The position numbers and the translations under genes are program-made. From positions 1,054,001 to 1,118,000 of the forward strand of contig JBLDXI010000009.1 of NCBI GenBank assembly GCA_047495785.1: a DNA stretch of 64,000 nucleotides, in the 5' to 3' direction. A model generated the notes under the pieces. The model made no database searches and had not been told where the DNA came from. It worked only from the letters and a program-made list of their open reading frames with translations. The stretch comes from Lepidodermella squamata (taxonomy: Eukaryota; Animalia; Gastrotricha). Below are positions 12,850 through 64,000 of the stretch, piece after piece. Position 1 is the stretch's first letter. The number at the start of each line of letters is the position of its first letter.

Positions 12850-14156
12850 ATGATTACTTGGCCGAGTGTTTTAACTCCTACCGTGGGTATTGTTTGCATT
12901 ATTGGTGCCGCAGCGATTGCTCAGTGGCTGCTCGGCGGTACAACCGTGAAAAAGAGAAAGAAAGGTTATTTTGAATACTTCAGACATTCGAAACTACTGT
13001 TTTATGCGTCATATCAGATTTACCCCCAGGACTGATCAATATTGGCTGGACTACATGCTATTGTAATACTGTGCTTCAAAGCATGGCGTCTCTTGATAGC
13101 TTGCGGGAATGGCTAGAAAAGGTCATGCAAGTCAATCCATCTCCCAATTTACACATCACCACGTGGAAATTGTTGTATGGTAATGAAAGAATGAGTTCCA
13201 CTGCATAAAGTGACAGATTTTAATTTAGAACTTAATCACGCTGATCCTGAGATAAACCTATTATCGAGTGAAAACCTGCTTTCTACTTTGGACCTCCGGA
13301 ATAAGTTCAAATTTTTCACGCAGCAAGTAAACTACAAATAATATATGTTTGCTCATCTAGCGATGATTTCGTATTCATTAGGATTGCCAAGAGTTCCTAC
13401 TGTTCATGTGTGATCAGCTTCAGCCATCTGCAGTCTTAACGAAGAGCCAAGGTTTTGGCCTTCACCATGCTTCAATTTCGACTTCGAAAATTATTCCGAA
13501 GTTTCCGCTTAGTGCAAAGCTGTCATCTCGTTTGAGATGTTTGAAATGTAATCATGCATCGCCAACAACAGTCGAGGCATTCGTTGCCCTTTCACTCGTT
13601 GTTCCCGCTCACCAGTCTGCCTCGAAATCTAATCCTGGGCGCTTTCTGCCTAATCTAAGCGACCTGATGTCATATTTCACTGCTGAAGAACTAGTTGGCG
13701 ATGCTAAATGCGAAAACTGTAATGAAAAAAACTGCTTGAAAAAGCAGGTCAAAATCTTTTCGGTGAGTCGGTCACATTTTTATTAAAATACATTAACAAA
13801 ACCGAACTCGTCAGGCTCCTCAAATTTTGTGTCTACATATAATTCGATCCGGTTGGAGCAACGATACCGCTACAAAAAAAGGCGAGCAAGTTATTTTTCC
13901 GGACACGCTCGACTTGTCACCATTCATGCATTTTAAATGCAAGCAGCTGCTCTACCGGCTACGCTCATTGATTGTGCATTATGGCTCAAAAACGTCCAGC
14001 GGCCACTTCATTGCTTATAGAAGATCACCTTCCGGGCGAAAATGGTGTTACGCTTCTGACGAAGAGGTTCGGTTCGTCGATATAGGTGACGTGCTGGCAT
14101 CTGAGCCTTATTTGTTGTTTTATGAGCGTTATATGCCTCTTGATCCTTGCTCGTGA
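12850..14156 (+). CDS. USP30: Ubiquitin-specific protease 30-like (N-terminal TM anchor plus USP domain)
   Basis: Hydrophobic N-terminus followed by KKRKK; Cys box GLINIGWTTCYCNTVLQ; QQ|DCQEF across an intron; CLKC/CENC; His box VHYGSKTSSGHFIAYRR...ASDEEV...YLLFYE. Confidence 0.8.
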
Positions 14157-44035: not shown

Positions 44036-46377
44036 TTAAATATCGTCGAATAGATTTCGAGACGATGGAATGTGTTGCTGGCCTGTGTTCGTCGGCTGCG
44101 GTCGCCCAAAGCCGCCTTGCGTGTAGACCGGTGGGTCAGCTGGTCCGCTCAGAAGCTGAGATCGATCGCTAGGATGAGCGGGCAGGCTACTAGCGCCGGG
44201 AAACGAGTTTAGATAAGGATCAGGAAGACTCGGAACGCTGCCAAAATTGTCGTTCGACGAATTAACCCCACCGGGTGGCATGTAATTGCGCCGTTGCCTG
44301 GCACTGATATCAGTATTAGAAGATGAAGCTCCGGCCTCACCTCCGTCACCCCGCGGATAAACCCCAAGGTTTTCCAGCTCTTTGCGCCGTTCGTCGCGCC
44401 TAGCTGCTCGATCGAGGTAACCGCGTTCACGAGCAATCAGCTGCCTGCCCTCTTCAATTAGTTCATTTGTCATGTCGTCCTCGCCAATGAACTGCTGGAA
44501 TCCGAGTGCGTGCAAAATCCTGGAGCCAATGCTGAAAATTGTGCAAAAGCACAGAATAAGAATCGCCATCGGGAAATAGATATTGAAGCCGGAAGATATG
44601 AATGACAGAAGTTGGAGGCGACCCATAATTTGACTGTATGCAGTCTCTGCTGTCATGTTTTTGTTGACGCCTCGCTCGAGATGAATCAGACTAAGGTAAT
44701 TCAAACAAAGAGCTGGCGTGAATCGACACAACAGCCTAGGCAAATAAATCAATAAAAAATCCAGAAAATTTCGGAATCCGGATACACTTACATTCCTGAG
44801 AAAATCAGGCTGTTTTCATCGGTATTGTGATAAGGTGATAAGTGATAATAACTCAAAATCCTGACTTTGAATATGGTGTAATACGCGCAGATTGATAGGT
44901 ATGCCACTGTGAAAGCCGTCAATAGCTCCAAAGTGACAAATGCGTGGCTTTGCTGAGCCTGGTCCATAAAAATTGCGTATAGCGATAGAACCGGATCCGG
45001 GCACCAGAAAACAACTTCAGACCAGACGACGAAAAGCGAACACACCGCTAGAATACAAGCCAAAAGACGGAAGAGCCAAGGTTGGAACAGACAGCGCCAA
45101 TACCATTCAACGCCAGGAGTGCAAATTATTTTGAAAAATCCTTTCCGAATTCCCGTAGTTCTGTGGAAGAAGCCAGTTGTGGCAATACTGTTGACCGTAT
45201 CTTCGTATTTCATTGATTTTGCCACTGAGGCTGTCCAACGAGTGCTAGCCATGGAATATTTGTGTAGGTTTTGTTTCAACTTTTTATGAAGCTTTGCGAG
45301 TGATTTCATCGAAATATCGCCCAGAAGATCGACGTCGGCAGAAGAATCATCTCGACCACTTCTACCTGAGCCACCTCGTCGGTTCATTCGAGTAGAGATC
45401 GACTCTGGTAATTTTTCCAACATTATCGTGATGTACGGCTTAAACTCGGGATGATTAGCGTTGACTGTTACTGAAGTTCGCTTGATTATTTCCGCAATTT
45501 CCGTCAAATTGTCTTCCGCATCGCTCCTATAAATGCACAATGTAGTGAGAAATTATTGATTGGGGAAGGTTCTTACTTTTCTAGGCTAAGCTTTGCCACT
45601 TTGAAATAAGCCTCCTTAAGCAGAGTGCGAACATCGCCTCTTCGCCAGCAGACTCGAGGAACTTCGACCAATCCGTAGCCAAGCAAGAAAACCAAACAAA
45701 ATAGACCCCACGTGTTCGAAGCGGTCACGGCGATGGTGTAGAGACTAGGGCCGTTTATTTCCACGTGCTTGGCAACTAATACAATGAGGAAAATGCCGGC
45801 AAGCAACAAATAAGAACCGTAGTACAACGCGTTGGAAATAATGGCAGTTTTGATTCGGCCCAACACGGTGAAATCGCCAGCGTTTGCGTACGACTGCATC
45901 AACGGCAACACAAGCCAGGTAAGTGCCTGACAAGACCAGTAGACTACTTGCCACAGCACGTATAGAACGTTTTCATCCGCCCCAATAAGAGGTTCCGAAC
46001 AATCAGGATTTACCGGGGTTACCGGGGTTGTTGCGTTAGATGAATCATTGGCAAGGTTTTTCGACGGGCCAACCGTCGTAACAACTAGCGCGGAATGAGA
46101 CTGATTTAGCTTCGATCCATTCGCATTCAAGCATTGTCGGTAATAAGTCTGCGATAAAAAAAATTGATAAACACGCTCACTTCAACAAAAAACGTCAACT
46201 TACATTAGATACATCAAGTGGTAGAACAAATAAAATTAGAAAGCAGAAGTACCAGGCGATATAGGTGACTACAAGAACCACAATGTGATTGCGCCGGATG
46301 TTGATGTACCGCGACAAGAATAAAAAAGCGACAACAGAGACGGCAACCAAGTCGAGGACAAAAGAAACCACATTCAT
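44036..46377 (-). CDS. LMBRD2: LMBR1 domain-containing protein 2
   Basis: WYFCFLILFVLPLDVS; LWQVVYWSCQALTWLVLPLMQSY; ASNTWGLFCLVFLLGYGLVEVPR; LLCRFTPALCLNYL; GFNIYFP; EEGRQLI. Four exons. Confidence 0.93.
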
Positions 46378-47821: not shown

Positions 47822-50450
47822 TCATTTTCTTTTGCCGGCAGCGGCAGCAGCAGTTTGCTGACTGGACTTGGTCTTTTTGACGACCACTTGCTTCGATATT
47901 TCCTCCTCTTTGCACAATTCATTTTGGTAATCACGCAGACGATCGGCCAAACGCTGCAGTGCAGCCTGTTGCTTTACTACCGCTGCGATGGAGCGAGATG
48001 CGAACGCCTCTTGGTCGAAATCGACCGCCCGGGTCGCACGAAACAGCTGTTCAATTTCGCGTTGAAAATTAACATTGGCTTCCATCAACGTTTTCATCTC
48101 ATCAGTAGCCGCTTCCTCGGCTTCGGCGCAGTGATCAACAGCCTCGTGAACGGCGAGAAAATCTTCATCCATTTCAGCAGCGTTTTGGGTTCTCAGCATC
48201 ATCAAATCATGGTTTTGAGGAGAATTCGGGATACCATAACCTTCATTATTATTTTCATAATTTCCGAGAGATTGATCTGCGTAGCCTTGCTGTTGGTCGA
48301 GCGGGTCAGAGGGTCCCAACTCTTTAACACGGTCAGCGTAACGAAGGGTATTGAGCGAATGCTCACAACACGACATTCCTGGGCTGATGGTCGCAATCAT
48401 GCAAGTTTTCGACCGCTCGCCAATGAACGAATCGCGTAAAACTTGCGTCAGTTTACTTGCTCGGAATGGTAAGTGACCACCTGGGCGACCAAGGGCACGG
48501 ATACATTCTTTAAGAGCCAACAAACTTTTGTTAATTTCAGCGCCTTCAAGACGGGTACGCCGGTCTGAAGACATGGTGTCCGCTCCCCGTTCGTTACCTG
48601 CGAGATCGATGAGCGAAAATTTTCCATACAGCGCTCCAGTTGGGCGCTTTCGCAGGACGATTTGGAACACGGCATGCGAACGCGAGGAATGGACGTTCGC
48701 TGAAGTTTGCCCGCTGGTTCTGACCATATTGCCTTGTTGAATGAGCCTGATTACGTCTTCTACGCACTGAACCCGCTCCTCGCTTAGTCCAACGACTTGG
48801 ACAACGCCTCGGGCGTCTTCAAGAACGCGAAGCTTCTCCTTCTCACGCAACAGATCATACACTTTTCCGGAATAAATTTCAAAAAACGAAACGCTGATAT
48901 CAACGTCTACCGGGCATTTGTTACTTTTCTGAAGAGCGAAAACATCACGAGCCGATAGAATGTAAATGCCATTAGTGCAATCTTGCACGCCAGTTTTACC
49001 AGGCTGAAACTGGCCACCCATGGTGTGTGTCTTGCCACTACCTGTTTGGCCGTAAGCGAAACAAGTGGCCATTCCTCCCATAAATACAGATTCAACAAGA
49101 GGGCGAGCAGTGAATTTGTACACACATTCGTTATCGGCTGTTTCATCGAAAGAGTAGTCGAACCGAAATGTTTGGTTTTCCAAATATTTGGTCAAATCGA
49201 CCTTGGTTTTGGGCTCGTGTACAATCACGGTATCACGAGTCGGAAGGGTAATGACATCAATGTCTTTCTTCGAAACCTCTTTGGGATTCATTGGACGTTT
49301 CCTGACGCAAACGCAAATTTGGTGATCCTGCACAACGTCAGCGTTCGTCAGCGGGTGGTAGTCCAGCCGTGACTGGAACTCTCTTATCATGCGCAGAAAC
49401 TCCCAGTTTGGATTTGACCGGTCAAACTCGGCGTCCATTTGCTTTCTATTTGCTTCTTGTTGTGCTCGTCGTTCTTCACGGCGTTTGGCTATTTTTTCAA
49501 TTTCACTGACGACACTAGACTTTGAGGCGGGAACTGCAGCTGCAGCGGCTGCAGCGGCCGCCGCTGCGGCAGCAGCCTGTTGGGCAGCAGCCGGAGCAGG
49601 AACTTCGGCCCCTCCCAACACATTCGATTTTCGGCCACGATTCTGCGAAGCTGCCTTTGTTCTTTTGTCGTAAGCAGCTTCGACTCCTTCCATAGGCACA
49701 ACGCTTGCCACGGCACTCTGAGGCTGCTGAACTGGAGGATTAAATGCCATTTCTTGTTCAATAATGGGCTGCACTTGAGGAATTCCAGAATATTGGTTGG
49801 TAGAGTCGGATGGCTGCTTGTTTCCGACGATTCCCGTTTTCCTAGGTTGCTGACGCGTTTGCTCTTTAAAAATCGAGATCCCAAATATAGGTTTCATTCA
49901 GTCAACCATGCTACTTACGTCTATTCATCTGTGGCGGCGGTGGCTTCATGGAGGTGGCAGTAATTGCTCTTGCTGACGAAATTTCCTGGGGTTGTTGGCC
50001 ACCAGCCAGAACGCGCCGCTCTCTGGCAGAAACTTCGCCACTTCCATTTACACCGGAAGCTGGAACATCGGCACGACCGTTAGGATGCTGGTTTTGTGCC
50101 GCAGACGCCGCAGTGCTAGCTGCCACGTTGGCTATGAGCTCTCGAAGATATTGATTTAGCTGTAAAATAACTCCAAATTCCACCTGTAAATCAGGAATTT
50201 ACATGTTGCAAGAATACTCATGGAATCACGCAATTACTTCTTTGCCCTTAGTTTCGCCTTTTTCAAACCATTCTACACTAGCGGATTTCGCATCCATGTT
50301 GACACCACTAATAACAGCAGAGTGGATACGACCTACGAAAAAGTCAGAACATGGCGCATCATGGAATGGACAGTTCTACTTACCATCGCTTCGCTGAATA
50401 TCAATTTTCATCCCCTCTTTAAGGACAGCAGAGAGACCACCTGAATCCAT
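47822..50450 (-). CDS. KIF2A: Kinesin-13 (KIF2A/MCAK-like) microtubule depolymerase
   Basis: N-terminal IQRSDGRIHSA...VEWFEKGETKGKE, KVDLTKY, GQTGSGKT, SSRSHA, DLAGNER, KECIRAL. ATG at 50450, three short introns. Confidence 0.95.
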
Positions 50451-51391: not shown

Positions 51392-52150
51392 GTAGATATT
51401 TTTATTTTTAATTTTGTAATATTGTAAATAAAGAGGTCTTAAAACGTGACAATGACTACTAATTGTTGAAGGATCTAAAGAGAAACGTAACGTAACGAAA
51501 ACCGACAGTTGTTATGATTTTCGCATGCGGCCAATCTTAGTTTTAATTTCTTAAAAAACATTCGAAATAAAAAAATTTTATATTTGTGTTATTAAAAAAA
51601 TTAAAATTTAGAAAAACAAAGAGAAATGATTTTTCGCGCCCAACTGTTATGAATTTGAATATGTCGTTTAGTCATTCATTTGTCATCGCACTATATGGCG
51701 TCTTGTTTGTTAAACAAACGTTCAGTAAACGAAGCTGTGTGATTATGTTGTGTGTTGCTGGACTTGCGTCTTGTGCCTGTTTTTCATTTGACTTTCAATT
51801 CATTTTTCTCTACTCTACTACTCTACTGACGAGTTCATAAACATAAGAATAAAAAAATAATAAATAAGGCCTTTCTCCGTAAGGAGCCATTAGGGCCTAA
51901 CCTTTTGTATCATTGTCATCCTTTTCATCGTCCTTTTCTCATTTTAGAAATTCATAAAGACAAATGAAGCGATTAAATGTGTTTTATTAAGCATTACGAT
52001 CTAGTAAACGAATGAAGCGCCTGCTGAGGTGCGAGGTGCTGAGAACTGAGAAGAGAAGCTGTGTGACGTATCGAAGTGATGTATCAAAAGCTCTCATCGA
52101 AAAGTCAGGTGTCAACGAAATTGGAACTTTCGGAACGAAGCTGACTAGAA

Positions 52151-52850
52151 TTAACGAATTGCAGGTCGCTTAGCGTTGCCGTGAGGGCGATAACGCTCAG
52201 CTGACTCGTTGACTTGAGTTACAGGGCACCGGTCGTTGATCGTGAGCTGACGGTCACCAGCGAACAGGCCGATCATCGCCTTAAACTGTACGACGGTTCC
52301 TTCGGCTGGTGGGCTTCGATCGCCGAAAGCCACTGCCAACATCACGCGTTCCGTACCGGCAACGAGAAACCGCCAGCGGATGTCGTCTGGTGTTTGTTTC
52401 GGGAAGACATGGGTCACCAGCCCTTTGACAGCAACCTTCTCGCGATGCTGTTTGTCGACTAAATCGTCAACTGTTAAGAACTCATCTTCGTGTCGTCCCG
52501 CGCAATCGGCCGGGTGTTCGACCTTGGCTGCGTCGACCCACAGCTCGTACTTATGGCCGGTCTCGCTATAACGCGATGCAGCCTAGAAAGTCATGAAGAT
52601 TTGAATGAAATTTCAAGCGCCTGTTCAGATGACTAACCGTTATCGTAGGTTCCGTGACGCGGATGGTACACCCGTTAAACACCATCGAACTCAGGCCCTT
52701 GATAACGACCCTGATCGCGGCACTGTCGTCTTTGATGACAACCGCCGTTTGCGACCCATCGCCAATTTTTTGCGGGGCCCCCTGAATGACACCCTCGATA
52801 AAATATGCGAAGTCACCTTGCCACAGGTCACTAATTATTTGCTTCTCCAT
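52151..52850 (-). CDS. Tandem OB-fold, RPA70 DBD-A/B-like ssDNA-binding protein (214 aa, two exons)
   Basis: A 55-nt intron GTTAGT...TTTCTAG (52637-52583) joins the ORFs 52566-52889 and 52151-52417 in frame. Motifs VIKDDSAAIRVV, AASRYSETGHKYEL (compare RPA70 A..Y.....YE), KVAVKGLVTHV and FAGDRQLTIN. Confidence 0.65.
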
Positions 52851-52911
52851 TAGAAGGCGTCGAAGCGAGAACAAAGTGATAAGAAACACAAGACAACGAC
52901 TTGATAAAAGT

Positions 52912-53285
52912 TGATCGAAAAATTGCTAGTTGCGAGTTGTAGAATCTGCGAAATGGCACGGTAGCCGAAGATTCTGACCTACTCGAGTAATTAATTATCG
53001 ATTGGCGGTGAGATCATACGGCCGACCCGTTGACCTGATCGGCTCACCGCTGCCTATTGTCACCTGTTTTATCTCAGAGCCGGTAAGTCATAATATTAGC
53101 TAGTCTTTTGATTGATTTTCCTGTTAATTGTCATTATATTGCGTAGGTGCTGTGGTGACCTCCGTGCTATGGCTGCTGTTATTGGTTCCTAATGACTAGT
53201 TGCGGCGCTAATTACTGGTTGCGTTTGCGTCAAGTCAGGTTACGACGCGAGACGAGTCTGGCCACCTGCGGTGATCAGTGGGTGT
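52912..53285 (+). ncRNA. Candidate structured non-coding RNA with a 64-nt intron-like insert
   Basis: Serial hairpins with G-U pairs on the plus strand; GTAAGT...GCGTAG AT-rich segment at 53083-53146; no meaningful ATG-initiated ORF in any spliced frame. Confidence 0.35.
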
Positions 53286-53330
53286 GCGCGCATCGCTTTC
53301 AAGAATGAAAAATATGATTGAAATGTCCAG

Positions 53331-56300
53331 TTATTGCTGTACTGTATAAAACAAAATATAAGCTTCGCGATAATGACCAAGAAAATTTGCAGCTGTTTTG
53401 ACTGTATCGTCGTTATAGTGGAAATACGTTTCTGTGCCGGGCTTTCGGGCTATTGTTGTGTAATGTCCATTTGTCGCATTTCTTCCGTGATGGCATACAA
53501 TTGCTGCAAGGTTATAGTTTTTATTGGAAAATGTGATTTGTTCGGGATAAATAACATGCGATAGGTTTTTTTCATTTTGAACTAACTCTGCCTGTCGTAA
53601 ATTTCGTGAAGGCTCAGCGTTGAAGTGTAAATAACGATCAAAGCGGCTGAAATGAATAACTAAATTGCGAGATGAATTTCCAAAAACTATTTTTCTGACA
53701 TGTGAGAGATTGTCTTCGCAATCGGCGCAATGTTTAACTATATTGTTATCTCGGCAGTAGTGGTCTAATCTTTCTTGTAACGTACACTGACTGTTGTCAT
53801 TCGGTAGCAACAAATCGATTATTGACGTACGTTCGACCTGTTCAGTTTCTTTGCTACAAATAGTACATGTATCGTGGAAATGTAGATCAACGCTAAAGTT
53901 ATGTGGTAACTCGGGAGTTTCGAGTTGAACCAATTTTATGAAAACTTCTTGACTATCCTGCTGATCGAAGTTTTCAAATATGTTGGGGTATAGTTTACTC
54001 ATAGCTGTCTTGAACAACGATGCATTCACATTGTTTAATCGATTGTTTATGTGCTGCAATGTGAATAATAGACTGCTGAATATATTATTAACAACGGGGT
54101 CATGTTGTGTCTCGTTAAGCCATGAAATTTGCGCTAGCAACCACTCCTTAAACCCTAAACATGCGTCAAAAGCTTGAATCATAGCATTGATGTAGCAAGT
54201 GTTTCCTATATTTGTTAATCCTGAATTACAGTTAAACAGATGCTGGCTAGATGTTGTGTTCAAATTAGTGCTGCTTGTTTCAACAATTGGACGCATTGTG
54301 CTATTTCTGCCTTCTCTCAGCTTCGTTTTGTTTATTTTAACGCCATCGTCTTCAAGATTTGCTGTGATATTACTGACATAATTTCTTATTTCTTCCTCGT
54401 AATTCCATGCATTTTGATCATCATCCTCATCATCGTCACTCTCGGTTATCGTGGTATTATTAATATTATTATTATAATTATTTATTGCCGCAACAAAAGA
54501 GGTGAATTTTTTACCAAATTTTGCTACCATGTTCGATTGTTCTGTTGCCTGTGTCTCGAAATACGAGTCTAACAATGACTCCAATTTATTGCTCAGTTTA
54601 ATGAGGCGTTCATCTTCTTTCAAGGTTGATAATTTCGGCTTGAAAAAATCGTAATCTGCGGCTGAAAGTTGTTTCAACAATATCACTCCTTTCCGAGTTC
54701 TTGCTCTAGATAATGCTAGATACAGGCTATGCACATCTATCTTATTCATGCTTGCTGGCCGTGGATCTGCTATTATTATGCAATCTAGAGTGCTTCCTTG
54801 TACTGAATGACAAGTTGCGCCATATGCTGGCTGTAAGGGGTAATTGTTTATTGTAAAGGTTTTACCATCTCGAGTCAGTTGAATACTACGAGATTCACGT
54901 TTAATCGGCATAACGCTGGCGGGCCAACTTTGGGGTAAACCTGGAAATCTTACTGAATTGTTGTTACCTTCTATGTCAACAAATATATTAATTGGAGGCT
55001 TGCTAGGTCGCCAAAAAACGCCGTCTTGTGTGAATTCAGTACCTTCGCCCCATTGAATATGTTTTATTGTTCCGCTTGAGCCGTTGGAAACCCCTTTACT
55101 TACCGCCTGATTTACCTTGATTTTTACTGGCATGCCTTCAAATACATGTAAAACCGCTGGTATATTTCCGGTTTTATTTTCTGGTAGCTGAAAAATTGAT
55201 ATCATTTCGGTAATATTAGCACCTCGAATAATAGCGGGTATTTTATACACGCGTCGATGCGGGTTTTCCGTTGCTATTTTCTTAAGTGCGGCCATATTTA
55301 CCATGTGTCGCGTTTCATTATCTGGCGAGACAATAGGTGCATTTCCTACTAATGAATTGAGTTGTGCTAAATCTTCAATCACACACCCGTTTAAAATATC
55401 TTTCATTATTTCTGTCCAATTACCTCTGCGTATCTTTTTGAGCTCTTCGCCCCAGACTGGATCATTGATATATCTGTGTTGTTCAGTTAGATATATAACG
55501 TTGTTTATTGACATATACTTCTCATATCCTAGCTGTGCGAATTTTGAAGCTTTTTTGCCTGGTGGTTCGAAGAGAAACTGTGATCTGACAGGCTCGAGCT
55601 GGAACCAATCTCCTAAAATCATAATTTGAATGTCTGGCCAGGGTTTCGTCAAACTGGTCTGTTTTAAAGCGTAAAGAGCCTCTATTGCTATACCGAAAAT
55701 CGCCTGATTCTGCATGCTTACCTCATCTAGTATCAAGCCATGTTTACCTCGCCATTTATTAATCAAATCATCGCTAGGATTTTTCAAATGATTCGGGATG
55801 TCATTTAATGGTGGTTTCATCGCAAATGCTGAGTGCAAAGTTTCGCCTTTGATAAGACTTGCACTGTTGCCTGTAGTTCCTTCATAACTTATTGCTTCAG
55901 CTAAACCCCACATTTTAAAAAAGTGCTGAATTGCTGATATAGTCTGAGATTTTCCACAGCCTCCGCTACCGATTACTAGAATAGGATCGCATTTTGTGAA
56001 AATATCTGGTAAATTCTCTATTTTAACGTCAAAAGATTTGAGTAAAACTCGACCGGCGAATAAAACGAAAACGTAATGCTGTTTCAAATTGAGCTTGAAG
56101 TAAGCAGACACTTCTGCAAGGGTTGGATATATTTTATTACTTATATTGGGTGAATACTCGACACTTTGGTACTGATTTTTTTTTATCGCTTCAGTTATGT
56201 GTTTCAAGATAATAACATGTGTTTGAGGTGAGTCTATATTTTTGTACAGATTACGTGTGACTTCGCATTCACTTCCAGATACTGTTGAAAAGGCGTTGAT

Positions 56301-59300
56301 TTTTGCCTCATCATTGACTTTTTTCAGCTCTTTATTTGTTACTGGCTTTGTTATTTGTAATTCATCTGTATTATCATCTAACTCGTTCCTAATAATACTA
56401 GTTGTGTCTAATGTGTAATTGACTAAACTAGAAATAGACTCGTCTATGTTTTCCTCGTGAAGGGCTTCTACTATGTCAAGACAATTCGCAGACTTCTGAT
56501 AGAACTTAACTAAGCTATCATCATCTATTGAGATAACCTTGTTGCCGCTGTTATAATTTTCGTTTATTATGTACTCACTCTCCACGGTCATATTTTTTTC
56601 TCTTTCATCCTCTTCTTTTCTAAATTTCGAGCTATCTTCCTGGGCAAAATAAAATTGTTGATGATAATTTAGCTTGCATCGAATCTCTCTTGATTGTTTC
56701 CAATTATTATACGCTGATTTTGCACTGTCCTTTTCATCTAAAAAATCGGCTCTAGGATCTCGGAATGCTTTATACAACAATAGTGCACACCTATAATATT
56801 TCTCAGCATCACCTTCATGTTCGTCTAAATTATCTCGATTGGGTAAGCGCGGGCCTACAATACGTGGGACTACCTGTTGTGGTCTGATGAGGACGCGATG
56901 TGACTCGTATTGTGGATGATTAGGATGAAATTTGTAATGGCTCTTCATCTTTTTCGTAACTTTTTTGTAGCCTAAAACATACCAATACCACGGCATATTT
57001 TCTAGTTCTTTAGGTCGATATAAGTAATCGTATATTGCTGCGTTTCTCTCGAACATACCGTGTTTATTCTGTGTGATTATGCATGACAAATCTTTCTCCT
57101 CTAGCATGTTTAAACCTTGGGTTAAAAGCAAAGAAGCGAAATCGTCAGAGAAATACCCGCCCTGTCCTGTAAGCAGAAAATGAGTAACAAGAGGCGATCC
57201 TATTTCCATCACAGAACTCTCATTAATTGACATTGCTATTAATCGTTGAAGTCCCACGCGATGTTCATTTATATCGAGTTCGTTTTCATTTTTCATTCGT
57301 TTGGATAAGCCAAGAGTAGCTACGTATGCAGCATCTCTGATATTTGCAGCTTTCGCGGAATATTTGGCAGCGTAGATAGCCTTAGATATAGCGCCGCTTG
57401 CTACTAGGCAAATGTCTATATTGAAGTCGTAGATGAGCCGAATCTCTGGACAATAGTTATTTACCCAGGCATTTCCCAATGTTCGCCTAGTATGTGGATG
57501 CAAGTTCTTATTGTCTACGCCAGTTTCTGTTATTAATTTTTGAGGGAATTTGAACCTACAAAGCGTTCGCTTTTTACTTGCTTTTCTAGTTATTTTACCA
57601 CACGTGAAAGTATGGGTGTATCCGTGGATTTGGTCTTTTCGCAAACTTTTGGAGAGCTGAACCGCGCGAACGCGTTTGTTTTGTGAAAATCCTCCAGGTA
57701 ATAACCTGATTTTATTTATGTTTTCATCGCTGATTTCAATTTGTTCTTCAGGGGTGAAATTCTCAGTTTTCATTTCGATTGCAGCATCGATAACCTCATC
57801 ATTGGTATGTGATTTTTGGCATGATTTGCACTTGGCGACTATTGGAGGAGGTGTATTTTTCTGTAGAATGTGCGAGTACATTTTGTCGACTTTTACTGAT
57901 TCCAAATAACCGCTGCAGCCGTCAGCATTACACGGTATTGAATTATCCGCTGGTATGTCCCAAAATATCGGTAATTCTGTTTTAATTAATTCGTTGAGAT
58001 ATTTCAGATACGTGTTGCTAAAATCGACGTCATTCATGAGTTTAATGAAATCATCGCGGTCACGAGGGAGTCCTACTATCCAAGCTACGCCGTGACAATG
58101 GATTCTCAGCCTGGCTTGAGACTCTGGCGCAAAATACAGGCTTTCGACATGACCTAATATACCAGGTTCTTTTTTTGGTTGTTTATTTTTCAAATCAAAT
58201 GCAAATAATATTTCCATTATACAGGTTATGCAGAGCCAGTAATATCGAGCTTGAAGAACGGGGTTTTTACTGACTATGCGGATCATTTCCGATGGCGAAG
58301 GCATCATCCAGCTAGCTAGAGCACGGCTCTCATCTGGCAAGTTCTCTCGTTGGCAGTTTGCTCCGTCCCAAAAAGCGACTAAAAGTGAAGAGTCTGGCTT
58401 TGGTGTAAAAGTGAAGAAAATGGACGGTATTCCACGGTAAATAATCATCGAGTCCAATTTTCGCTGAAAATCAGTACGTTCCTCGTTGCTGCCGAGTCGT
58501 GCAGAGACACTAGCCGATACTGTATGTAATATGTCTCTTTCCTCGTTTTCGGTCAAAACTTTTTCATTGAAATATCGTCGCTGTTTGTCAAGAGAATCCG
58601 ATTGAACCGCTGTAAAAATATCGGCACCTGTCAGCTTCGCTAGGTTAGGTATCACGTGCGGTTTTATTTTTGTTTTAACTTTGAGCTGTCTAATTATGCT
58701 TTCTTTGCTAATATAATCGTAGAGCACTAACTTGAATGTGGGATGAGTTGCAAAATTTTCGGTAGATAACATGAGGTAGTGTTTTGCTAATTCAAATAGA
58801 GTGTAATGATGGGCTCGTTTTTCTTTCAAACCTCCGCATCCGTATTGAAACAAAGAAGGAAAAACTTTTTCAAAAAACAAAATGTCAGTAGCCTTTAATA
58901 TTGTTTTTGATCTGTGAGCAACAAATGTATTTTCTTCTGTTGTCCCGCTGAGAAGTAAGTTAACGGCTTTCTGAGTTAATTTATCTTGTTTATGCTTAGC
59001 GTCTATTATTACAACCTCCGTCTCTGTGATAGCATTCGATTGTGAAATAGAATCATCATCAGTTGTATCAGCGACAGATTTTCGTATTTGTCTAGCATTA
59101 TTGATGAGTTCTCGGGTTAAATTGTCCTCTGGCAATCGAAAAATTACATCATTCATGTCGCCTAATGAACCAGTATTTGTTGGAAAGTTTTTAAATAAAG
59201 GATTTATGCGAATGCATTCTTCATGTAATTGTCTGACAATTTGTGGGTCAAATTCCAACTTCTTAGCCATGAGTAATTCCTGATCGCTTGTCATTGGCCC

Positions 59301-60488
59301 AGCCATGATGACTTTGGAGGCGCCGCCTTTCAAAGTTTGAGGTAAGCTTGATGCAATAGTAGCTTCGTGGTTATCCCAACAAATCAAATGGCTGCTGAGA
59401 TTATTACCAACTCCACCGATGACGACACGTATATTACCGGTTACACGAGCCAGTGATATGCACTGCGTTGCAATATAGCCTGCTTCAGCAAATAAACTAT
59501 TGTTTCCTAATACGAAGTGGTCTGCAATCGCAAATTTAGGAATTCTGAATGATTCTTTTGATCCTTTTGCTAATTTTTTCTCGACTTCGTTTAGGTAATT
59601 CAAAATATCTGTGGTAACCCAACAGAAGTATGATTTTTCTGCTTCATCGCGATAAAAAGACCTCGGTGATAAGAAAAGACGATTTAACCTGGAGTCAAAT
59701 TTATTACAGTCGTATGACTCAAACATAGGATCAGTGGTCCACGGCTTATTACCACAGAAATACACGCGAGCTCTGAAAGGAAGATTATCACATCTGACTG
59801 ATGTACATTCAAACATTGGAGTATAGAGATCAGTAATAAGGCATATTTTGTGATCATATCTGTTTCTCAAGTATTCAATCGCTTCAGAAACAAGTTTTTC
59901 GCGGTATTCGTCACTAGCAACAAATATTTCATGGGATTCATTCAATACTGTCATATCATCGTGGCTCAATAGCGAGGAATCATTAAGCATGCCATCATCA
60001 GTGAGTAATTTAGAATTTGAATCGTTGTCACGGGTAATAATATTAGAATCACGAGTTTTCAAGCATTTAATTTCTCGATACCTTTTTCTGTGAGCAGCAG
60101 CGTTTTTGATTCGCCTCAATTCACGCGAGTTGATGTCCTCCGTTGCACGTTCAATCCTCTTGCGATTTCTATCCTTCTCTAACCTTGTGGGATCAGCTTC
60201 AGATGCCCTTAGGGCACCTACCGCCTGTCTCAGATATTTTAAACGCGACCGCCGAGATTCTGGAGTAACCAAAAAATTTCGGCTACTTGATGGAGCAGTC
60301 GTGTTCGTTGGCAAGGAACAGACTGGTGGTTGTGGGCCGCTATTTACGGCCCTACGTTTTCGATTGACTGCTCGGGAAGTCCCAGGTGCCGTAGATGTCT
60401 GAGGGACTTGTTCGGAAGACTGTGTTGACAAGGCGGTGTCCTGATCTGTAACGTTACCAGGTAGCCGTTTCTTCTGACGCGTTTTCAT
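53331..60488 (-). CDS. Helitron-like Rep-helicase (HUH/Y2 Rep plus Pif1 SF1B helicase) with C-terminal USP/peptidase C19 domain, 2385 aa
   Basis: Rep motifs PSIFFTFT, ESQARLRIHCHG, YAAKYSAK. Helicase motifs GSGGCGKS, LILDEVSM, GDWFQLEPV, LTEQHR, GVSNGSSG, ATCHSVQGSTL, YLALSR. USP motifs GLTNIGNTCYINAMIQ, QQDSQE, HHGRNATNGHY, YNDD, AYILFY. Uninterrupted and intronless. Confidence 0.95.
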   Translation of the reverse strand: MKTRQKKRLPGNVTDQDTALSTQSSEQVPQTSTAPGTSRAVNRKRRAVNSGPQPPVCSLPTNTTAPSSSRNFLVTPESRRSRLKYLRQAVGALRASEADPTRLEKDRNRKRIERATEDINSRELRRIKNAAAHRKRYREIKCLKTRDSNIITRDNDSNSKLLTDDGMLNDSSLLSHDDMTVLNESHEIFVASDEYREKLVSEAIEYLRNRYDHKICLITDLYTPMFECTSVRCDNLPFRARVYFCGNKPWTTDPMFESYDCNKFDSRLNRLFLSPRSFYRDEAEKSYFCWVTTDILNYLNEVEKKLAKGSKESFRIPKFAIADHFVLGNNSLFAEAGYIATQCISLARVTGNIRVVIGGVGNNLSSHLICWDNHEATIASSLPQTLKGGASKVIMAGPMTSDQELLMAKKLEFDPQIVRQLHEECIRINPLFKNFPTNTGSLGDMNDVIFRLPEDNLTRELINNARQIRKSVADTTDDDSISQSNAITETEVVIIDAKHKQDKLTQKAVNLLLSGTTEENTFVAHRSKTILKATDILFFEKVFPSLFQYGCGGLKEKRAHHYTLFELAKHYLMLSTENFATHPTFKLVLYDYISKESIIRQLKVKTKIKPHVIPNLAKLTGADIFTAVQSDSLDKQRRYFNEKVLTENEERDILHTVSASVSARLGSNEERTDFQRKLDSMIIYRGIPSIFFTFTPKPDSSLLVAFWDGANCQRENLPDESRALASWMMPSPSEMIRIVSKNPVLQARYYWLCITCIMEILFAFDLKNKQPKKEPGILGHVESLYFAPESQARLRIHCHGVAWIVGLPRDRDDFIKLMNDVDFSNTYLKYLNELIKTELPIFWDIPADNSIPCNADGCSGYLESVKVDKMYSHILQKNTPPPIVAKCKSCQKSHTNDEVIDAAIEMKTENFTPEEQIEISDENINKIRLLPGGFSQNKRVRAVQLSKSLRKDQIHGYTHTFTCGKITRKASKKRTLCRFKFPQKLITETGVDNKNLHPHTRRTLGNAWVNNYCPEIRLIYDFNIDICLVASGAISKAIYAAKYSAKAANIRDAAYVATLGLSKRMKNENELDINEHRVGLQRLIAMSINESSVMEIGSPLVTHFLLTGQGGYFSDDFASLLLTQGLNMLEEKDLSCIITQNKHGMFERNAAIYDYLYRPKELENMPWYWYVLGYKKVTKKMKSHYKFHPNHPQYESHRVLIRPQQVVPRIVGPRLPNRDNLDEHEGDAEKYYRCALLLYKAFRDPRADFLDEKDSAKSAYNNWKQSREIRCKLNYHQQFYFAQEDSSKFRKEEDEREKNMTVESEYIINENYNSGNKVISIDDDSLVKFYQKSANCLDIVEALHEENIDESISSLVNYTLDTTSIIRNELDDNTDELQITKPVTNKELKKVNDEAKINAFSTVSGSECEVTRNLYKNIDSPQTHVIILKHITEAIKKNQYQSVEYSPNISNKIYPTLAEVSAYFKLNLKQHYVFVLFAGRVLLKSFDVKIENLPDIFTKCDPILVIGSGGCGKSQTISAIQHFFKMWGLAEAISYEGTTGNSASLIKGETLHSAFAMKPPLNDIPNHLKNPSDDLINKWRGKHGLILDEVSMQNQAIFGIAIEALYALKQTSLTKPWPDIQIMILGDWFQLEPVRSQFLFEPPGKKASKFAQLGYEKYMSINNVIYLTEQHRYINDPVWGEELKKIRRGNWTEIMKDILNGCVIEDLAQLNSLVGNAPIVSPDNETRHMVNMAALKKIATENPHRRVYKIPAIIRGANITEMISIFQLPENKTGNIPAVLHVFEGMPVKIKVNQAVSKGVSNGSSGTIKHIQWGEGTEFTQDGVFWRPSKPPINIFVDIEGNNNSVRFPGLPQSWPASVMPIKRESRSIQLTRDGKTFTINNYPLQPAYGATCHSVQGSTLDCIIIADPRPASMNKIDVHSLYLALSRARTRKGVILLKQLSAADYDFFKPKLSTLKEDERLIKLSNKLESLLDSYFETQATEQSNMVAKFGKKFTSFVAAINNYNNNINNTTITESDDDEDDDQNAWNYEEEIRNYVSNITANLEDDGVKINKTKLREGRNSTMRPIVETSSTNLNTTSSQHLFNCNSGLTNIGNTCYINAMIQAFDACLGFKEWLLAQISWLNETQHDPVVNNIFSSLLFTLQHINNRLNNVNASLFKTAMSKLYPNIFENFDQQDSQEVFIKLVQLETPELPHNFSVDLHFHDTCTICSKETEQVERTSIIDLLLPNDNSQCTLQERLDHYCRDNNIVKHCADCEDNLSHVRKIVFGNSSRNLVIHFSRFDRYLHFNAEPSRNLRQAELVQNEKNLSHVIYPEQITFSNKNYNLAAIVCHHGRNATNGHYTTIARKPGTETYFHYNDDTVKTAANFLGHYREAYILFYTVQQ

Positions 60489-61896: not shown

Positions 61897-63115
61897 ATTT
61901 CCTTTGGTCGGTGCATTTCAGTAAACAAGAGTATCGGATGTGTATACCTTCGAAAATACTCTCGCACACCTAATGGGAGCTTATGAAAGCACATCGATGC
62001 CAATCAACAGGTGTGGATATCTAGCGTCTTCGTAAGTGTTTATGATTTGACGTCGGTTTTCATTTTCAAATTGTACAGGTCCCACTGTCTTCTGTCTTGC
62101 ACCCTCCCCGCACCAGAGAGTATGAGTAGTATTTGTAAGAGCTAACCCCGTCAGTATTCCGCCGAGCTTTAAAAATGCTCAAAAAATGTTACACCACGAA
62201 CAGGAGCAATCGGGTTGGACCCACTTAGGAACTGACATGGAATTGACGTGGACATGGAATGACCGAAATTACAAAATCCTAGCTTGAATTACACTTCCAG
62301 TTTAATTTAAAAGGACACATGCCAAAAGGACTCCATGATATTTCGTTTATTAGTATTTTCCACGCTTCAAATCGGAAATTGTGCCAAAGCGGTAACTTCT
62401 CAATATAAAAAAGTCATCACAATTCCTCGGCTGATAAGCACTGCGCAAAAAAATTGCGGTCCCTGATGGTCTGTGATTCGCATGGTGTTTGCGAAAAATA
62501 AACCATGCGGTTGCACCATGACATTTTTTCATATTCTTAAAGTATACCCGATCTCGAAGAATCTGGTAAATTTCACCACAAGCTTTCACCACAGATTCAC
62601 CACGAAGAATGAAGATTTTAATTTACGGTGGACCGGACTTCTTTTGCGCAGTGTAATTGGCTCTTAGCATCCTGAGGGCTGGTTCGCAGCGAACGATGGT
62701 ACATATAGATATGTATTTTATTGAACTTGTGAATCTGAGGGTACGCTTAGTGCGTCTATTGGTGCGAAGGAGCCACTATGTTGAATGAAATTACGGGGTG
62801 TTCGGGAATGTGTCTTATATCTTGTTTTTTTTCTGTGTATCATAAGGCGCCGATAAAAATGCACATAATGCGAAGTTCACATCATTCTTGGGCTGCGATT
62901 TAGCATGGTATATTTGGCAGCAATCAAAAGAATGTCTTATCACAGTATTGAAAAGGCACCATGTTCATCTTCGCTTTCCTCCGATCAATCTCGCTTTGGA
63001 TCAAATAGGCAGCTGCTCTGCATGCTTTGCGCCCATTCTTCGACTTGCTGACCAAAACACCGACACTGAATAAAAGCAAACGGTAAGCACCACTGTCATC
63101 GTAAATTAAGCTATT
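61897..63115 (-). pseudogene. Degenerate coding-like sequence, probably continuous with 50900-51346 before the Helentron inserted
   Basis: Protein-like fragments broken by stops and frameshifts. The reconstructed empty site GGAAAT|TAGgtaag restores an exon end with a GTAAG donor. Confidence 0.3.
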
Positions 63116-64000
63116 TTACCCAGTGCCAAGGTCGCGAAAGTTGATCACAACTTGTTGCCCGGTAGAGCTCATCCGTGCATTCGGATGTAGGGTGCATCGA
63201 ATTTGGGACGATTTGTCTGATGATTCTACGGCGACAACATCGATTACGTGAACGTGACAAGCTCGGCAGGCGACCGCCTCCTCAGCTTGGGCCGATAGGT
63301 TTAGCGTCAGTGTGATCTGCTCGCGTAATTGTGTTGGCATTGATGAAAATGCCTGCCGCTTTACCGCGGCTGAAGTTGTGGATGCAGGCGTAACAGGACA
63401 AGCTTTCATGAAAATAACTGGTGAAAACGCGACAACGTTTGATGCAATTTTTTTGTTTCCAAGCTCAGCCAGCGTAACTTCTCCAAATTTGAGATATTTT
63501 ACAGCGATATTAGTGGTATACTGCACCGCTAGCGGCGGGACAAAGATTTTAACATGCTGCGGAAGCTTGGAAGTATGCAATGGAGATGGAGCTGATTCAG
63601 ATATAGGAGAAATGGGCAGCCCAGATTCAGGTGGCAGCTTATCAAAATCCAGCCGGAATAATCCACCTGTTGCGCTAACTTTGATTATTTGCGTTGTTGG
63701 GTCGCTCATTGAAGCCTCATTCGACGAAAATTTTGTAGCGTTACGTTCTTTCGGGCTTTTCGGTTGGCTGAATTTTCTGAATTGAGTTTCGTTGAGCGGG
63801 GGCGGTGGCAACGGAGGCTGAGCTGAAGCCATTTGGAGCAATCCTGGGCTGACTGTTTCTTCGATATGTGTAGAGTAATCGGCGTCATTTTTCACAGCCA
63901 TCGATGACGGAGGAGCAGGATAACCTGTAACGTTGTTTGCCAGTGGTTGCTCAGTTTTTGAATCAATTGAATTGCAAGAATATTCGCATTCGACTGGTGC
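63116..64000 (-). CDS. Partial ORF with RPA70 DBD-C-like zinc-ribbon OB fold; probably belongs to an older mobile element
   Basis: Frame is open to the window edge. ACRAC...IRCTLH followed by VVINFRDLGTG resembles the RPA70-C pattern CxxC...CxxC, then hydrophobic strand-D-x-TG. CFGQQVEEW follows in a shifted frame, so the 3' end is spliced or degenerate. Confidence 0.45.
   Translation of the reverse strand, partial: APVECEYSCNSIDSKTEQPLANNVTGYPAPPSSMAVKNDADYSTHIEETVSPGLLQMASAQPPLPPPPLNETQFRKFSQPKSPKERNATKFSSNEASMSDPTTQIIKVSATGGLFRLDFDKLPPESGLPISPISESAPSPLHTSKLPQHVKIFVPPLAVQYTTNIAVKYLKFGEVTLAELGNKKIASNVVAFSPVIFMKACPVTPASTTSAAVKRQAFSSMPTQLREQITLTLNLSAQAEEAVACRACHVHVIDVVAVESSDKSSQIRCTLHPNARMSSTGQQVVINFRDLGTG

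Follow-up and report, generated by a model that had tools for sequence, protein, structure and literature searches.

We analysed a 64,000-nt stretch of the genome of the gastrotrich Lepidodermella squamata (contig JBLDXI010000009.1, positions 1,054,001 to 1,118,000; hereafter the window, numbered from its own first letter), in which a single open reading frame (ORF) on the minus strand joins a rolling-circle transposase to a deubiquitinase. Its 2,385-amino-acid (aa) product consists, in order, of a Rep domain of the HUH nuclease type, a PIF1-type helicase, a linker rich in asparagine and acidic residues, and a full USP (peptidase C19) domain; the interval 53331-54225 holds the USP domain and the stop codon. 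Pfam profiles for Helitron_like_N, PIF1 and UCH all match this one stop-free product, in agreement with a sequence-only reading of the same DNA, according to which the Rep-helicase (RepHel) frame continues into a complete C19 domain. All of the motifs named in that reading are present, both in the linker (NNYNNNINN at aa 2003, ESDDDEDDD at 2016) and in the USP (GNTCY at 2095, QQDSQE at 2176, CTIC at 2208, CADC at 2254, NGHY at 2340 and YNDD at 2358). As predicted from these domains, a single polypeptide would nick and ligate DNA, unwind it in the 5'-3' direction and carry a USP whose active site is intact. The coordinates of all features are collected in Table 1.

We calculated how readily such a frame would stay open by chance, taking the stop-codon rate of 6.8% that the remaining five frames show. 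With this composition, the probability is ~1e-73 for the whole ORF, ~5e-5 for the 140-codon linker and ~1e-10 for the 326-codon USP stretch, and because of the latter two values the fusion ORF is not a product of chance. The composition of the ORF is even along its length (GC is 0.32-0.48 and GC at third codon positions, GC3, is 0.29-0.41 per 150 codons). A read-derived contig of 5,706 nt from run X1, possibly from the same sample as the assembly, covers positions 52001-57086 with 0 mismatches and contains the in-frame helicase-USP junction that had been proposed. The linker matches no Pfam domain.

The USP is complete as far as sequence and a structural model can tell, with nothing detectable by sequence or fold missing. 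In a scan of the whole product, the Pfam UCH profile (PF00443) matches aa 2090-2381 (E 7e-28) and is covered from position 2 to 254 of its 254 positions, so that the domain ends 4 residues ahead of the stop codon. Searched as regular expressions, the two PROSITE signatures are found, PS00972 for the Cys box (aa 2090-2105) and PS00973 for the His box (aa 2325-2343), and the key residues are present, namely Cys2098, His2342 and Asn2359/Asp2360 together with the zinc-ribbon residues Cys2208/2211/2254/2257. We aligned the domain with 30 diverse USP domains from an exhaustive search, which are 23-29% identical to it. Among the 31 aligned USPs, columns C39, H283 and D301 are invariant and correspond to Cys2098, His2342 and Asp2360; the zinc-ribbon columns C149 and C195 are likewise invariant and C198 is nearly so. 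Asn2359 stands at the position of the third triad residue, within an N-D-x-x-V motif, and aligns with what we take to be Asn574 of USP2. The retained residues, the two signatures and the invariant triad columns uphold the earlier claim that the catalytic triad is intact, and the domain is apparently, on these motifs and the model described below, competent for catalysis.

An AlphaFold2 model calculated from the USP alignment has a mean predicted local distance difference test (pLDDT) of 82.7 and a predicted template-modelling score (pTM) of 0.82. In Foldseek it matches USP46, USP12, USP4, USP1, USP2 and USP30 (E 1e-21 to 1e-23, template-modelling score, TM, 0.72-0.76), and an ESM Atlas search with the USP returned USP clusters only (TM 0.75-0.80). 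By sequence, the best matches among solved structures in the PDB are USP30 and USP2 (~2e-14). Taken with the motifs, the model and its matches describe a fingers-palm-thumb fold bearing a four-cysteine zinc ribbon. Judged by its sequence the domain is fast-evolving, and its putative substrate is ubiquitin or a ubiquitin-like modifier.

We now turn to the transposase part. A protein search found just three relatives, ~25% identical, all of which contain DUF6570, the domain proposed as a marker of the HLE2 group of Helitron-like elements (HELIANO, Nucleic Acids Res 2024, PMC11417382). In comparison with these three HLE2 relatives, residues H797, H799, Y1039, Y1043 and K1046 are invariant, as are the Walker A (G1507-S1514) and Walker B (D1588/E1589) motifs of the helicase. 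Pfam PIF1 spans aa 1499-1701 (5e-11) and UvrD_C_2 spans aa 1888-1932; PIF1 helicases of the PDB match the helicase part at 1e-9 to 1e-15, and a PDB comparison at E up to 0.01 matched no Helitron transposase, group 1 included. DUF6570 goes undetected by Pfam in the fusion protein, even at E up to 5. When aa 315-436 are compared with the DUF6570 regions of P0001 and P0002 by hhalign, the match is collinear but weak (E 0.021, probability 2%), and this stretch is possibly a very divergent DUF6570-like region. One of the relatives, the Helentron-type P0002, adds a tegument-like deubiquitinase domain (Herpes_teg_N) and an apurinic (AP) endonuclease (Exo_endo_phos). A Pfam scan of our whole protein found no AP endonuclease (Exo_endo_phos), and the name Helentron in its strict sense is therefore inapplicable. 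Going by few sequences, we provisionally class the protein as a divergent RepHel of the HLE2 type, nearer to that group than to HLE1. By domain order, the USP is in the position that the AP endonuclease has in Helentrons.

The ancestry of the USP was sought by an exhaustive search of 1.84 billion representative proteins, which gave 3,456 matches at an E-value threshold of 0.001. The true single-domain USPs that match best are 24-34% identical (E ~1e-17), and no Rep or PIF1 domain occurs in the 13 USP matches that were scanned, four of which exceed 1,500 aa. The two top-scoring matches were considered as Helitron relatives and rejected, one being a repetitive oddity and the other a merged model of ten tandem USP genes. 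The best-scoring database matches are models that merge tandem USP arrays of ten and four domains in two NCBI eukaryote assemblies (L001 10001-56835 and L002 10001-31629), where more USP genes lie alongside. Within the window, a host USP gene at 12975-14153 on the plus strand (three exon-like ORF pieces with USP-profile matches of 1e-24, 2e-10 and 7e-8) was tried as the source of the capture and rejected, as it is only ~24% identical to the element's USP; it is the sole other USP in the window, and the element contains no second one.

GC and GC3 are even across Rep, helicase, linker and USP, and the GC3 of the RepHel-USP frame is 0.35, compared to 0.42-0.61 in nine host-gene ORFs or exons of the window. 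Because of the low identities and the even GC and GC3 along the ORF, the USP is not a recent capture of a local host exon. It has a long evolution behind it, alongside the transposase or in some other rapidly evolving context, in which no catalytic residue was lost.

Sequencing runs provide a measure of copy number and a first view of selection. The X1 contigs over the ORF have a depth of ~58, the same as that of a contig unrelated to it; no other sequence of this run reaches 85% identity across the ORF, and the element's DNA is not repeated within the window. Two further runs, X2 and X3, contain short contigs that are 90-99.6% identical to parts of the helicase region. Comparing these related contigs with the helicase region, 10 of the 14 listed differences are synonymous (21% expected, P = 7e-5), which points to constraint on the helicase; no variant piece falls on the USP. 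In X3, a run labelled as a third organism, low-depth contigs are 96% and 99.6% identical over 54826-55002 and 55309-55548, and its long contigs have no match. These helicase-like pieces could be from a related species, from contamination or from a recent transfer.

Run X2 resembles a cDNA library. One of its contigs lacks canonical introns, and one loose end contains what we take to be part of the SMART cDNA primer, so that X2 is probably a cDNA run. Its pieces fall on 26 of the 30 bins of the locus, including the linker/USP boundary (54184-54386), where the two pieces at 54184-54256 and 54302-54386 are identical to the window. A spliced, non-coding RNA runs antisense to the RepHel frame. The contig that contains it (1,419 nt, 0 mismatches) has a depth of 37, several times that of the other pieces on the locus. 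It skips the first two introns listed in Table 1; the third is inferred from its loose end, which agrees with the window starting at 58008. Once spliced, the RNA is interrupted by stop codons in each of the three frames. The antisense RNA could serve the host in silencing, act as a regulator that the element encodes, or result from read-through that began elsewhere, and, given its presence, signs of expression at the locus are not automatically signs of sense mRNA.

Downstream of the fusion, a two-exon gene encodes 214 aa. Its language-model features are nearest to clusters of OB-fold nucleic-acid-binding proteins (0.89-0.91), it has no match in Pfam, PHROGs, PDB or a homologue search, and a single-sequence AlphaFold2 model has no confident fold (pLDDT 38). 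X2 cDNA pieces lie on its exon 2, and its GC3 is 0.59-0.63 versus 0.35 for RepHel-USP. Helitron-like elements often carry an RPA-like gene, and the 214-aa product may be a putative OB-fold protein similar to RPA or single-strand-binding proteins, with its membership of the element uncertain. Short paralogous pieces of this gene occur elsewhere in the genome, on X1 contigs with depths of 91-280.

The surroundings are those of a compact animal genome. Confirmed introns in the window are 54-62 nt long, and an LMBR1-like host gene at 44036-46130 (minus strand) is divided into ORF pieces with gaps of only ~35 nt. Upstream of the fusion ORF, positions 62439-62653 contain an inverted repeat with two 24-nt arms, 88% complementary and 167 nt apart, which could be a small insertion resembling a miniature inverted-repeat transposable element. 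An Rfam scan of the whole window gave no match.

Table 1. Features at the RepHel-USP locus and its flanks (window coordinates)
Feature	Position	Strand	Remarks
RepHel-USP fusion ORF	53331..60488	-	2,385 codons plus stop, uninterrupted
Possible very divergent DUF6570-like region	59181..59546	-	aa 315-436; upstream of Rep, as expected for HLE2
Rep (HUH nuclease) domain	58086..58781	-	aa 570-801; Pfam Helitron_like_N, 1.3e-14; HUH at H797/H799
Catalytic tyrosine pair	57360..57374	-	Y1039-x3-Y1043; motif search
PIF1-like superfamily 1 (SF1) helicase	54693..55994	-	aa 1499-1932; Pfam PIF1, AAA_19, UvrD_C_2
Linker	54222..54656	-	aa 1945-2089, 145 residues; helical stretch, then Asn-rich and acidic low-complexity runs
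USP / peptidase C19 catalytic domain	53334..54221	-	aa 2090-2385
Spliced non-coding RNA, antisense to RepHel ORF	57588..58008, continuing past 58008	+	X2 contig
Introns of the antisense RNA	57698-57751, 57805-57866, 57953-58007	+	GT..AG
Two-exon gene, 214 aa	52151..52850	-	480 nt downstream of the fusion ORF; gene model from sequence
Exons and intron of the 214-aa gene	exon 1, 52850-52638; intron, 52637-52583; exon 2, 52582-52151	-	intron 55 nt, GT..AG
Flanking host kinesin	47822-49897	-	
Flanking host ORF	63116-63901	-	

We next compare this architecture with known systems. The HELIANO survey names UCH as one of 20 domains that Helitron-like elements have stably taken in, finds it almost exclusively in HLE2 with enrichment in subgroups c and d, mostly of lungfish and axolotl, and counts it among 17 domains 'encoded in different ORFs' (PMC11417382). 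The present protein shares with those elements an HLE2-side RepHel that is associated with UCH (PF00443) and is without an AP endonuclease. In contrast, their UCH is in a separate ORF within giant genomes, whereas here it is in frame at the C-terminus, within a compact genome with introns of ~55 nt. The sequence-only reading had tentatively suggested that a USP fused to RepHel was an undescribed architecture, which holds only in part: the association of UCH with HLE2 is already on record (PMC11417382), and an in-frame C-terminal RepHel-USP fusion was not found described in the literature searched. The novelty is thus partial, as the USP-HLE2 association is already catalogued and the new part is the in-frame C-terminal fusion in the endonuclease position.

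Helentrons provide the closest functional parallel. Erven et al. (Nat Commun 2022, PMC9741609) showed that tegument-like VTD domains inside Helentron ORFs are active deubiquitinases, acting on K48, K63 and K11 chains, found OTU domains beside or in place of VTD, and proposed that these enzymes prevent the proteasomal loss of transposition proteins; USPs in Helitrons are not mentioned there. As in these elements, a rolling-circle transposase ORF contains a papain-type cysteine deubiquitinase (here a predicted one). It differs in belonging to the USP family, in its C-terminal position after the helicase, and in the absence of an AP endonuclease; the VTD domain of P0002, by comparison, is N-terminal (aa 12-160). 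With Helentrons in the strict sense the protein shares a Rep, a PIF1 helicase and an extra C-terminal enzyme in one ORF, and its nearest relatives contain DUF6570, but the defining Exo_endo_phos is absent and the USP is in its place. The earlier suggestion of a capture convergent with that of OTU is reasonable in the form of a further acquisition alongside OTU.

Cellular USPs (USP2, USP8, USP21, USP30, USP12/46) have the same fold, Cys and His boxes, QQD motif and four-cysteine zinc ribbon, and in USP2, USP8 and USP21 the catalytic domain is also at the protein's C-terminus. In contrast to all of these, the domain analysed here is joined to a transposase, and it is 18-29% identical to them with no clear subfamily affinity. 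Fusions of transposases to proteases occur in other superfamilies as well, one example being the Mutator-like elements with a Ulp1/C48 protease. In a chordate ESM Atlas cluster of 130 members, UCH occurs together with DDE_Tnp_1_7 (piggyBac transposase) in 69%, and Peptidase_C48 is also present in Helitron-like elements (PMC11417382). Each of these cases joins a transposase to a ubiquitin or ubiquitin-like protease, and by analogy they suggest a recurrent benefit; they differ in transposase superfamily and chemistry, and none has a covalent tyrosyl-DNA intermediate.

We consider that the locus is best read as a low-copy, very divergent HLE2 transposase gene that has a functional, element-borne USP deubiquitinase as its C-terminal domain, with a probability of about 0.62. 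Several observations weigh against this reading. No other RepHel-USP fusion appeared in protein or metagenome searches, though such blanks are weak evidence: a search limited to long proteins found no full-length relative through the USP region, an ESM Atlas feature search with helicase and USP returned PIF1-only clusters, a single-protein scan of metagenomes found nothing, and an alignment scan of metagenomes gave 80 loci, mostly helicase-only and none with a USP in a six-frame hidden Markov model scan. The fusion locus is single copy, both in X1 at 85% identity or more and in the window. For HLE2, the terminal features sought were short terminal inverted repeats, a 3' hairpin and insertion between T and T; searches for direct repeats, inverted repeats and hairpins in both flanks were indecisive and gave no convincing termini, and a 10-bp inverted pair at 51945/61503 could well arise by chance. 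The Pfam UCH score is 98 bits, versus 180-260 bits for cellular USPs. Finally, the X2 pieces on the locus are of low depth and undefined strand, and the only clearly spliced RNA is the antisense one.

Part of this evidence would equally suit a gene that the host has domesticated, that is, a former HLE2 transposase-USP fusion kept as a single-copy cellular gene and no longer mobile, for example for the use of its helicase and deubiquitinase activities in DNA repair or replication. A single, fully intact copy with cDNA contigs over its ORF, the failure to find terminal repeats, a hairpin or further copies, the mainly synonymous differences in related contigs, and the near-identical pieces (96-99.6%) in X2 and X3, both labelled as other organisms, all agree with it. 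We regard domestication as unlikely, while giving it real weight: the GC3 of the fusion ORF is below that of all nine host ORFs or exons, as would not be expected had it long been subject to host codon usage, and a spliced antisense RNA overlaps the ORF. The HUH histidines and both catalytic tyrosines are also kept, as domesticated genes may do too.

A different account accepts the mobile element and denies the USP a role in it. The domain would have been captured and fused by chance, then tolerated, without contributing to transposition, and would be intact since the copy is young. Helitron-like elements do capture many host fragments, whether captured domains serve transposition was left open by the HELIANO survey (PMC11417382), and a single copy says nothing about conservation of the USP. 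What makes a mere passenger improbable is the combination of only 24-34% identity to known USPs with retention of all catalytic and zinc-binding residues and both PROSITE signatures; divergence with every key residue kept implies a long evolution under constraint since capture. The USP also matches the rest of the ORF in composition, and these elements repeatedly contain unrelated deubiquitinases (OTU, VTD, UCH/USP) as well as a C48 Ulp1-type protease. Hardly credible, in our estimate, is an artefact, either as an assembly chimera or as mRNA splicing that yields separate Rep-helicase and USP products. The low-complexity linker is prone to misassembly, and UCH has been placed in a different ORF before (PMC11417382). 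Yet the 5,706-nt X1 contig crosses the junction without a mismatch (with the same reservation as to its sample), the two X2 pieces at 54184-54256 and 54302-54386 are identical to the window, the frame is open through 145 linker codons (P ~5e-5), and the only candidate minus-strand intron is weak and far from the junction.

If the locus is indeed an HLE2 transposase gene with its own functional USP, a mechanism can be outlined. HUH transposases stay covalently bound to DNA through a tyrosine while the helicase unwinds kilobases, and DNA-protein crosslinks, like many proteins bound to chromatin, are tagged with ubiquitin by the cell so that they can be removed. The USP would travel with the transposase and remove ubiquitin in cis or nearby. 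It would most likely act on the transposase, or on the long-lived intermediate in which the transposase is covalently tied to DNA through tyrosine, and so spare them ubiquitin-driven proteolysis; a second possibility is replication or repair factors at the nick, such as ubiquitylated PCNA or RPA. The selective logic would be the one proposed for the OTU and VTD deubiquitinases of Helentrons. The recurrence of unrelated deubiquitinase types in these elements supports, by analogy, a benefit from ubiquitin removal, and does not by itself identify the substrate. More specifically, the USP may be a dedicated shield that strips ubiquitin from the covalent tyrosyl-DNA-transposase adduct, which would otherwise be degraded as a DNA-protein crosslink; we offer this narrower proposal as a doubtful one.

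The idea of transposon-borne deubiquitinases is already established, and the present locus corrects its catalogue in one respect: a USP can belong to the transposase polypeptide, and not solely to a neighbouring gene. If the shield proposal is true, at least three unrelated deubiquitinase types (OTU, VTD and USP) have been recruited for one purpose. The occurrence of OTU, VTD and USP, together with a C48 Ulp1-type protease, in rolling-circle transposons suggests that host ubiquitin signalling is a real obstacle to these elements. RepHel-USP provides a clean test case, as a point mutation of Cys2098 separates the transposase from the deubiquitinase, and it could reveal whether ubiquitin-dependent repair of DNA-protein crosslinks restrains HUH transposases.

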